DNA from: Paragordius varius | Taxonomy: Eukaryota; Animalia; Nematomorpha | Assembly (NCBI GenBank): GCA_964247055.1 | Contig: OZ176057.1 | Coordinates: 4,030,001-4,094,000, forward strand | DNA: 64,000 nucleotides | Reading direction: 5' to 3' | Shown here: positions 15,314-18,171 of the stretch, one piece after another | Numbering within the stretch: the stretch's first letter is position 1 | How the letters are laid out: each line of letters opens with the position of its first letter | The notes under the pieces: model-generated | What the model was told of the DNA's origin: nothing | Databases searched by the model: none | What the model saw: the letters and a program-made list of their open reading frames with translations, nothing else | Program-made: the position numbers and the translations under genes

Positions 15314-18171
15314 ATGCAAATATTTGTCAAAACTCTAACTGGCAAAACTATCACGCTAGAAGTCGAAGCCAGCGACACTATAGAAAATATTAAAGCCAAA
15401 ATTCAGGATAAAGAAGGCATTCTACCCGATCAACAGCGTTTAATATTTGCTGGAAAACAATTGGAAGATGGTCGTACTTTGTCAGATTATAACATTCAAA
15501 AAGAGTCTACTCTCCATTTAGTACTACGACTTAGAGGAGGTATAATATTAGCTGACTAACTTTTTATATTTTGATTCAAAGCTTAATTTATAAAAAATGT
15601 CCTTTAGACAAGATTTTGTTGAATGCAAAGTAATTTAAACTATATTATGACCTAGGAATGCAAATATTCGTAAAAACCCTTACCGGTAAAACCATTACGC
15701 TCGAAGTCGAAGCCAGTGACACGATTGAAAACATTAAGGCTAAAATTCAGGATAAAGAAGGTATTCCCCCGGATCAACAACGTTTGATATTTGCTGGAAA
15801 ACAATTGGAAGATGGTCGTACTTTGTCAGATTATAACATTCAAAAAGAGTCTACTCTCCACTTGGTTTTGCGACTCAGAGGAGGTATAATTAAATTATAC
15901 TTATTCTTATGTTTATTATGGAATTGTTATATGTTTCATTTGGCTACATTTTTCTTTTATTGTGGTAAAATTAGTTTAAATTATAATTTGCTACATGTTG
16001 TCCTAAATAATCTTTTAAAACCAAAAATTTTGTGTTCTTGTAAAAAATTTTTTCAAATTTAGGAATGCAAATATTCGTTAAAACCCTTACGGGTAAAACA
16101 ATCACCCTTGAAGTAGAAGCCAGTGACACGATTGAAAACATTAAGGCTAAAATTCAGGATAAAGAAGGCATTCCACCCGATCAACAGCGTTTAATATTTG
16201 CTGGAAAACAATTGGAAGATGGTCGTACTTTGTCAGATTATAACATTCAAAAAGAGTCTACTCTCCATTTAGTATTACGACTTAGAGGAGGTATAATATT
16301 AGCTGACTAACTTTTGATATTTTGTTTTAAAGCTTAATTTATAAAAAACTCTGTCCTTTAGACAAGTTTTTGTTGAATGCAAGTTATGTAAATTATATTA
16401 TGACTTAGGAATGCAAATATTCGTTAAAACCCTTACCGGTAAAACAATCACCCTTGAAGTCGAAGCCAGTGACACGATTGAAAACATTAAGACTAAAATT
16501 CAGGATAAAGAAGGTATTCCCCCTGATCAACAACGTTTGATTTTTGCTGGAAAACAATTGGAAGATGGTCGTACTTTGTCCGATTATAACATTCAGAAAG
16601 AATCTACTCTCCACTTGGTTTTGCGACTCAGAGGAGGTATAATCGAATTAAACTTATTCTTATGTTTTTCATGGAATCAATATATATGTTTCATTTGGCT
16701 ACATTTTACTTTTAACGTTGTAAAATTACAGTTTAAATTATAATTTGCTACATGTTGTCCTAAATAATCTTTTAAAACCAAAAATTTTGTGTTCTTGTAA
16801 AAAATTTTTTCAAATTTAGGAATGCAAATATTCGTTAAAACCCTTACCGGTAAAACCATTACGCTTGAAGTTGAAGCCAGTGACACGATTGAAAACATTA
16901 AGGCTAAAATTCAGGATAAAGAAGGCATTCCACCCGATCAACAGCGTTTAATATTTGCTGGAAAACAATTGGAAGATGGTCGTACTTTGTCAGATTATAA
17001 CATTCAAAAAGAGTCTACTCTCCATTTAGTATTACGACTTAGAGGAGGTATAATATTAGCTGACTAACTTTTGATATTTTGTTTCAAAGCTTAATTTATA
17101 AAAAACTCTGTCCTTTAGACAAGCTTTTGTTGAATGCAAAGTAATTTAAATTATATTATGACATAGGAATGCAAATATTTGTAAAAACCCTTACCGGTAA
17201 AACTATTACGCTCGAAGTCGAAGCCAGTGACACGATTGAAAACATTAAGGCTAAAATTCAGGATAAAGAAGGTATTCCCCCTGATCAACAACGTTTGATT
17301 TTTGCTGGAAAACAATTGGAAGATGGTCGTACTTTGTCCGATTATAACATTCAGAAAGAATCTACTCTCCACTTGGTTTTGCGACTCAGAGGAGGTATAA
17401 TCGAATTAAACTTATTCTTATGTTTTTCATGGAATCAATATATATGTTTCATTTGGCTACATTTTACTTTTAACGTTGTAAAATTACAGTTTAAATTATA
17501 ATATGCTACATGTTGTCCTAAATAATCTTTTAAAACCAAAAATTGTGTGTTCTTGTTAACAAATGTTTTTCACAATTTAGGAATGCAAATATTTGTTAAA
17601 ACCCTTACCGGTAAAACCATTACGCTTGAAGTTGAAGCCAGTGACACGATTGAAAACATTAAAGCGAAGATACAGGATAAAGAAGGTATTCCCCCTGATC
17701 AACAACGTTTGATTTTTGCGGGGAAACAATTGGAAGATGGTCGTACTTTGTCAGATTATAACATTCAGAAAGAATCTACTCTCCATTTAGTATTGCGACT
17801 TAGAGGGGGTATAATAATATTTATGACTTTTGATATTTTGTTTTAAAACCTAAATTTTTTTAAAAACGATCCTTCTTTTAGACAAGTTTTTGTTAAAAGC
17901 TAAGTAATCTAAATTTTATTAATATTTAGGAATGCAAATATTCGTTAAAACTCTCACCGGTAAAACTATTACACTCGAAGTCGAAGCCAGTGACACGATT
18001 GAAAACATTAAGGCTAAAATTCAGGATAAAGAAGGTATTCCCCCTGATCAACAACGTTTGATATTTGCTGGGAAACAATTGGAAGATGGTCGTACTTTGT
18101 CAGATTATAACATTCAGAAAGAATCTACTCTTCACTTGGTTTTGCGACTTAGGGGTGGCTCAATATGTTAA
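15314..18171 (+). CDS. UBC: Polyubiquitin (8 units + SIC tail, 611 aa), one exon per unit
   Basis: Exons 15314-15539, 15656-15883, 16063-16290, 16409-16636, 16820-17047, 17167-17394, 17581-17808, 17930-18171. All 7 introns are GT-AG, phase 1, inside the Gly76 codon (G|gtataa...tag|GA ATG). Spliced length 1836 nt = 8x76+3 aa plus stop. The symbol denotes the polyubiquitin class, not proven orthology. Confidence 0.93.

Follow-up and report, generated by a model that had tools for sequence, protein, structure and literature searches.

Introduction

Polyubiquitin is the textbook example of an uninterrupted tandem-repeat open reading frame, and genes of the stress response tend to have few introns. 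Hairworms have the nematodes as their sister group, and for this reason a comparison with the Caenorhabditis elegans gene ubq-1 (UbiA) matters for the hairworm locus described here. The nematode gene (Graham, Jones and Candido 1989, Mol Cell Biol 9:268) reportedly comprises 11 units with four cis-spliced introns in its coding sequence. The ubiquitin of C. elegans carries Ala19, as does the one analyzed in this work. In the polyubiquitin gene of Volvox carteri, one intron is located at a fixed position inside each unit and the internal exons are 228 nt long; an exon of this gene does not correspond to one ubiquitin. Polyubiquitin genes with spliceosomal introns are documented for V. carteri (X74214) and Schizophyllum commune (AF031628) (PMC7730772).

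The human UBC gene has dual-specific splice sites, AGGT, between Arg74 and Gly75 of its units, at intervals of 228 nt (Duan et al. 2024, Genome Biol, PMC10809524). Splicing removes entire units, RT-PCR shows a ladder of products with different unit numbers, and the amount of ubiquitin was proposed to be under the control of splicing (PMC10809524). The variation looked stochastic: it did not respond to over-expressed ubiquitin and did not differ between tissues (PMC10809524). A ubiquitin number tuned by splicing is an idea already published for human UBC, and it was not borne out there. In a full-text search of the literature, we came across no polyubiquitin gene described as having introns at all of its unit boundaries, and a structure with one exon per ubiquitin and real introns is probably unreported.

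Here, we analyzed a 64,000-nt stretch of the Paragordius varius genome (assembly GCA_964247055.1, contig OZ176057.1, positions 4,030,001 to 4,094,000 of the forward strand), referred to below as the window. All positions are given in window coordinates. The searches were carried out with single exons or natural ORFs. Around the gene, the window consists mostly of transposon remains and ORFs that could not be annotated.

Organization of the Locus

Reading of the sequence, together with an ORF listing over 14900-18600, revealed eight ubiquitin units on the + strand at 15314-18171. Each of the eight + strand ORFs runs through LRLRGG, and the unit starts were placed by a script at 15314, 15658, 16065, 16411, 16822, 17169, 17583 and 17932. 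The units are separated by seven spacers of 116, 179, 118, 183, 119, 186 and 121 nt, in this order. All seven begin with GTATAAT, end with YAG or TAG and interrupt the reading frame in phase 1, between bases 1 and 2 of the Gly76 codon. In units 1-7 this codon is GGT, and its GT continues as GTATAAT; units 2-8 are each preceded by (C, T or A)TAG/GA-ATG, where the slash marks the predicted splice site. The common pattern of the spacers is G/GT...AG/GA. When the GT-AG spacers are removed from the sequence, GGA-ATG (Gly76-Met1) is rebuilt at 7/7 junctions and the frame is restored. The original prediction of seven phase-1 introns at G/GA of Gly76 with six internal exons of 228 nt was confirmed to the base by the ORF listing and the script.

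The features of the gene model, all on the + strand, are as follows. Exon 1 (15314-15539, 226 nt), supported by the ORF listing, the script and Pfam, extends from Met1 to base 1 of Gly76 in unit 1. Intron 1 (15540-15655, 116 nt, GTATAAT...CCTAG, phase 1) belongs to the shorter of two intron types, designated A, and intron 2 (15884-16062, 179 nt, GTATAAT...TTTAG) to the longer type B. Between them lies exon 2 (15656-15883), composed of GA and unit 2 up to the G of Gly76; like all exons from 2 to 7, it is 228 nt long. Exon 3 (16063-16290) is followed by intron 3 (type A, 16291-16408, 118 nt), exon 4 (16409-16636), intron 4 (type B, 16637-16819, 183 nt), exon 5 (16820-17047) and intron 5 (type A, 17048-17166, 119 nt). 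The 3′ part of the gene contains exon 6 (17167-17394), intron 6 (type B, 17395-17580, 186 nt), exon 7 (17581-17808) and intron 7, a diverged type A copy (17809-17929, 121 nt). The coding part of exon 8 (17930-18171, 242 nt) consists of GA, unit 8, the codons for Ser-Ile-Cys and TAA. The ending RGG-Ser-Ile-Cys-TAA represents a C-terminal cap, as found in polyubiquitin genes of the UBI4/UBB/UBC type. The first AATAAA on the 3′ side of the stop (18218-18223) is, by its motif, the likely polyadenylation signal.

Upstream of the coding sequence, we found a perfect match to a heat-shock element, TTCTAGAAATTTC (15190-15202, + strand), 112-124 nt before the ATG, which by its motif is a candidate regulatory site. 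The motif is part of 150 nt of unique sequence that separate an upstream repeat from the start of the coding region. Perfect motifs of this kind occur three times in 64 kb (0.81 expected), and about 0.004 would be expected in any given 300 nt.

The gene model with one exon per ubiquitin and phase-1 introns in Gly76 is supported by every sequence test run. We hold with good confidence that the locus is a single stress-type polyubiquitin gene, driven by the heat-shock element and constitutively cis-spliced to an eight-ubiquitin mRNA, and that its layout is a by-product of the duplication of an intron-bearing module. In such a gene, transcription would proceed as one unit from a compact promoter with one heat-shock element. 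Cis-splicing at seven GT-AG phase-1 introns would then give an mRNA for eight head-to-tail ubiquitins with the Ser-Ile-Cys cap, and deubiquitinases would cut the eight-unit product into free ubiquitin.

Spacers as Predicted Introns

The GC content of the spacers is 17-24%. The gene as a whole is set in an AT-rich animal genome. Alignment of same-type spacer copies showed indels whose lengths are not divisible by three, and stops are present. The spacers appear free of coding constraint, unlike the flanking exons. Translation from the preceding unit through introns 1-7 gives tails of 5, 58, 5, 34, 5, 34 and 11 aa before a stop, and 0/7 spacers read in frame into the next unit. A multi-ubiquitin product therefore requires splicing. 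Beyond the splice sites, types A and B show no detectable likeness (global alignment z = 1.8). Nevertheless, GT and AG stand precisely where splicing would restore the reading frame in spacers of both kinds, which is more than chance. Agreement of the donor GAG/GTATAA with the general metazoan consensus is confined to positions -2 to +3, which weighs against the gene model; the consensus of this genome may be a different one.

These data were also compared with a different reading of the locus, in which eight monoubiquitin cistrons are expressed separately, either as small genes or as a nematode-style operon with a 3′-end signal and a trans-splice acceptor in each spacer. Each unit does start with ATG and, if left unspliced, ends at a stop after its tail, but the tails are of differing length and unconstrained. 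The intercistronic distances of nematode operons are similar to the 116-186 nt measured here. The motifs TATAAA (in introns of type A) and ATTAAA (in those of type B) could act as internal promoters or poly(A) sites; hexamers of this sort are expected by chance at about 78% A+T. A motif search found neither AATAAA nor ATTAAA in introns 1, 3, 5 and 7, all of type A, so a 3′-end signal is not present in every spacer. No heat-shock element was found by motif search in any of the seven spacers, and the C-terminal cap and stop followed by AATAAA occur after the last unit only. Separate cistrons would moreover leave unexplained why GT follows base 1 of Gly76 in 7/7 cases and why the heptamer GTATAAT is common to unrelated spacer types. 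We consider separate expression of the units very unlikely.

Other origins or functions of the spacers were also considered. An Rfam search of the introns and flanks was negative for RNA families; the introns therefore host no known snoRNA. The possibility that they are decayed ubiquitin units, as a model based on dual-specific splice sites would have it, was rejected, as their likeness to the units was not above that of shuffled sequences (p 0.16-0.70). An origin from transposon-derived introners was rejected as well: no copies were found elsewhere in the window, and the read depth is ordinary, unlike that of the upstream repeat.

Coding Constraint and Independent DNA Data

All eight units were recognized by Pfam as full-length PF00240 with E-values of 2e-32 to 2e-33. 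The units match canonical (human) ubiquitin at 74/76 residues, and the common differences are P19A and V26I. Additional amino acid changes are present in only two units, P37L in unit 1 and A28T in unit 4. Third codon positions account for 39/42 variable sites among the eight exon units. In pairs of units from the same register, 5-22 of 76 third positions differ, as compared with 0-2 of 152 first and second positions. An exact-protein look-up of the 81-aa read-through ORF returned no record. In a word-based protein search with the same ORF, di-ubiquitin fragments dominated, and a ubiquitin with Ala19/Ile26 was absent among the 120 matches listed.

The region 14700-18700 was compared with read runs from three coded organisms in three studies (X1, X5 and X6) and from a soil metatranscriptome (X9). 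The sequence search of runs also matched many soil metatranscriptomes, each with a small share. Contigs of X1, X5 and X6 cross the exon-intron borders with 0-7 letters per contig differing from the window. They run from exon into intron and were for this reason read as DNA. The X5 contig covers intron 1 (15535-15670) with zero differences, X1 contigs cover intron 5 (17033-17194) and part of intron 6 (17384-17502), and X6 contigs cover exon 7 (17576-17849) and part of intron 7 (17833-17983). The small number of differences indicates the same or a very close species, so these data are silent on deep conservation. In the case of X9, we obtained exon-only pieces of 60-108 nt with 90-95% likeness, which fit many places and have loose ends from foreign ubiquitin genes. 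These pieces represent ubiquitin from other organisms; none of them shows an intron joint.

Tandem repeats are prone to mis-assembly, and Leu37 in unit 1 of the window could be taken as a sign of decay. That the locus is a product of mis-assembly, or an array of pseudogenes in decay, is in our estimate extremely improbable. Three independent DNA data sets reproduce the borders, so the layout is not an assembly artefact. Substitutions are overwhelmingly in third positions, and no unit has a frameshift or an internal stop. As for Leu37 (T at 15423), the X1 and X5 DNA has C at this position, which gives Pro37. The locus is very probably a real, constitutively spliced polyubiquitin gene, as judged from its sequence.

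Duplication History

The introns alternate between type A (116-121 nt) and type B (179-186 nt). Introns 1, 3 and 5 are 92-96% alike, and intron 7 is 77-81% like these; the similarity among introns 2, 4 and 6 is 92-98%. The same alternation is seen in the exons, with a likeness of 95-97% among units 2, 4 and 6 and of 98% between units 3 and 5. Whole two-unit modules have a length of 753-763 nt and are 90-95% alike. On these similarities, the gene is composed of about 3.5 copies of a module of about 755 nt with the order ubiquitin, intron A, ubiquitin, intron B. Tandem Repeats Finder reported nothing at the locus, because modules of about 755 nt are longer than the periods it can detect.

The simplest history would start from an ancestor with two different boundary introns, placed at the protosplice-like GGAG/G in the Gly76 codon, and would continue by unequal crossing-over in a two-unit register. 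Growth of the gene would have occurred by tandem duplication or unequal crossing-over of the ubiquitin-intron A-ubiquitin-intron B module. Expansion by two units at a time leads to an intron at every unit boundary and to internal exons that are all 228 nt long. The layout with one exon per unit would then be mainly a product of the history of the gene. In-frame exon skipping and harmless intron retention would be its by-products and may occur at a low level.

Possible Exon Skipping and Intron Retention

According to a further part of the original prediction, the loss of any internal exon by skipping leaves the frame intact. This is true, since all of them have 228 nt and the same phase on both sides (1-1). 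The layout might on this ground be maintained by regulated exon skipping, which would tune the number of ubiquitins per mRNA, and retention under blocked splicing (e.g., during heat shock) would still yield a processable ubiquitin. The heat-shock element motif at the promoter would agree with such a function. The duplication of two-unit modules accounts for the layout without selection. As for retention, the original prediction described a retained intron as Gly followed by a short tail. The first part holds, as the unspliced 5′ site reads GGT (Gly76) in each case. The tail of 5 aa (IILAD) is found only in introns 1, 3 and 5, and the others give 11-58 aa, so that the products of retention would carry tails of 5-58 aa in all. 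A Gly76 codon upon retention is automatic for a phase-1 intron located after the G of GGN, and by itself is no argument for adaptation. A retained intron would also place a premature stop upstream of the later junctions, which normally triggers mRNA decay. In human UBC, the unit number per mRNA does vary by splicing, but this appeared to be stochastic, and neither feedback nor tissue-dependent regulation was apparent (PMC10809524). We regard maintenance of the layout by regulated skipping as unlikely.

The per-unit introns could also be seen as a fail-safe that adjusts the dosage of ubiquitin. Removal of all seven in the absence of stress would give eight ubiquitins per mRNA, and stress that impairs splicing, or regulated skipping, would give fewer. 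A frame-shifted or non-processable product would never arise, since skips are all in frame and a retained donor still codes for Gly76, followed by a tail that can be removed. The chance that the introns serve in this way seems low to us. If this were true, the gene would realize in nature, and by means of real introns, the control of ubiquitin supply through splicing that was proposed but not demonstrated in human UBC.

The Same Intron Position in Other Species

A single scan of a metagenome collection for YAG/GN directly before a ubiquitin start gave 56 loci. Most of them are polyubiquitins with a Ser-Gly insertion between the units, or first units in other contexts. Two metagenome species were found to have the same Gly76 phase-1 intron, with the pattern GGAG/GT...YAG/GT-ATG. 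The first (L032, Ga0224510_10248715) contains at least three units and introns of 248 and 274 nt, with the borders GGAG/GTATGA...TCTAG/GT-ATG. An exact-protein look-up of its ORF returned no record. The second is represented by two contigs. In L009 (Ga0058701_10005015), unit 1 follows a 5′-UTR-type acceptor, and a 562-nt GT-AG spacer separates it from unit 2. L060 (ERZ27241733 k141_934861) is from the same species and contains a complete two-unit polyubiquitin ending with RGG-Cys-stop. The L009 contig also carries a gene with a Menorin/FAM151 domain, a family which we take to suggest an animal; a protein search with the Menorin exon matched only itself.

The exons of the two metagenome species are 86% alike, and those of either species are 69-74% like the exons of the window. 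Both differ from the window gene in their GC content of about 40%, in a ubiquitin with Pro19/Ser22/Val26, and in introns that are unrelated to those of the window gene. The spliced junction is AG/GT in the metagenome species and AG/GA in the window gene. Unrelated spacers in different species thus keep GT and AG at the frame-restoring positions, which is good evidence for true introns. The predicted phase-1 Gly76 intron between ubiquitin units occurs in at least three species, and the architecture is rare but not unique. The uniqueness that the original prediction implied is weakened by these loci.

Discussion

A stress-type polyubiquitin gene with a predicted intron at every boundary lends itself as a natural and clean test case for three questions. 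The first is whether modularity at the level of exons is used to set the ubiquitin output, which was raised for human UBC and left open (Duan et al. 2024). The second concerns the propagation of introns by tandem duplication; what was duplicated here is a module of two units that contains an intron of each type. The third is whether the Gly76 site (GGAG/G), used in at least three species, is a recurrent hot spot of intron gain or the place of an old shared intron. The locus also carries a warning for annotation, since ORF-based callers split such a gene into eight "monoubiquitin plus tail" genes.

In comparison with known systems, the C. elegans gene ubq-1 is said to have four introns per eleven units, whereas the window gene has one at each unit boundary. 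Of the other species with intron-bearing polyubiquitin genes, V. carteri is an alga and S. commune is a fungus, so neither is an animal. The window gene resembles human UBC in that splice signals recur at a spacing of 228 nt, where two units meet and inside the sequence coding for LRGG, so that in-frame removal of units is possible. In UBC, the units follow each other without non-coding DNA in between, a single AGGT can play the role of donor or of acceptor, and it is the ubiquitin units that are removed as introns. The dual-specific architecture was not found here: the donors lie in AG/GT, and separate acceptors (TAG/GA) are located 116-186 nt downstream. Unlike UBC, the window gene has seven predicted non-coding introns, with its own donors and acceptors inside the Gly76 codon.

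Sequence Surroundings of the Polyubiquitin Gene

The polyubiquitin gene (15314-18171, + strand) is bounded on both sides by a very high-copy repeat, which lies at 14700-15164 and has further copies at 13101-14637 and 20055-20645. The copy number was judged by contig depth in X1, a sequencing run read as DNA. The summed depth reached millions for the repeat, whereas it was hundreds to a few thousand for the gene. The repeat contains the palindrome GGGGTATTTAAATACCCC. Judging from this layout, the 150 nt that separate the repeat from the ATG is all the room for the presumed proximal promoter. 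Two variants were found in run X1 upstream of the coding sequence. A second allele at half depth carries CC>TT at 15312-15313, just 5′ of the start codon, and one contig has a 35-nt deletion at 15233-15269, which presumably falls within the 5′ UTR or the promoter.

Transposable Elements and Other ORFs in the Window

The remains of an LTR retrotransposon were located at 5957-9700 (+ strand), with aspartyl protease, reverse transcriptase and RNase H domains scattered across several broken frames. Two stretches, 30745-32927 (+ strand) and 50632-53463 (− strand), appear by eye to be LINE-like (non-LTR) elements, as their translations contain a YADD motif in ORFs that look like reverse transcriptase. 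A Pfam scan of three ORFs in the second stretch (50971-52664, minus strand) matched no family.

Small cysteine-rich ORFs were detected at 34327-34515 (−), 44957-45274 (+) and 59180-59380 (+), and further ones at 30074-30373 (−), 40068-40412 (−) and 45794-46207 (+). Several have a CCCP motif in common, for example DDYGCCCPIFTTG and DQYGCCCPYPTTG. By appearance, these ORFs form a putative local family that encodes short proteins of secreted type.

Two long neighbouring ORFs of 310 and 425 codons occupy 25134-27385 (+ strand), lie 47 nt apart and differ in frame; the Pfam scan of both gave no match. Both may belong to a single lineage-specific gene interrupted by a short intron. Such ORF lengths are unusual for a genome of 29% GC.

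Ubiquitin Genes in Metagenome Loci and Rebuilt Splice Junctions

Six metagenome loci (L057, L059, L061, L062, L064 and L066), on contigs of 23-29% GC, each carry a ubiquitin gene. The product has 77 aa, ubiquitin plus Met, and shows no difference from the read-through ORF found in the animal-like gene at L009. Viral genes were checked on L057 only, and this contig is giant-virus-like in content because it carries two NCLDV major-capsid genes. This 77-aa identity arose by coincidence from looking up exact sequences, and introns have no part in it.

In L032 and L009/L060, loci of two other species with a Gly76 phase-1 intron between ubiquitin units, the predicted spliced junction restores a donor-like AG|GTATG, so that recursive or dual-specific splicing could in principle occur. 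Dual-specific splicing there would resemble that of human UBC, in which AGGT serves as donor or acceptor. The predicted junction of the Paragordius varius gene is rebuilt as AG|GAATG, which rules out recursive or dual-specific splicing at this position.
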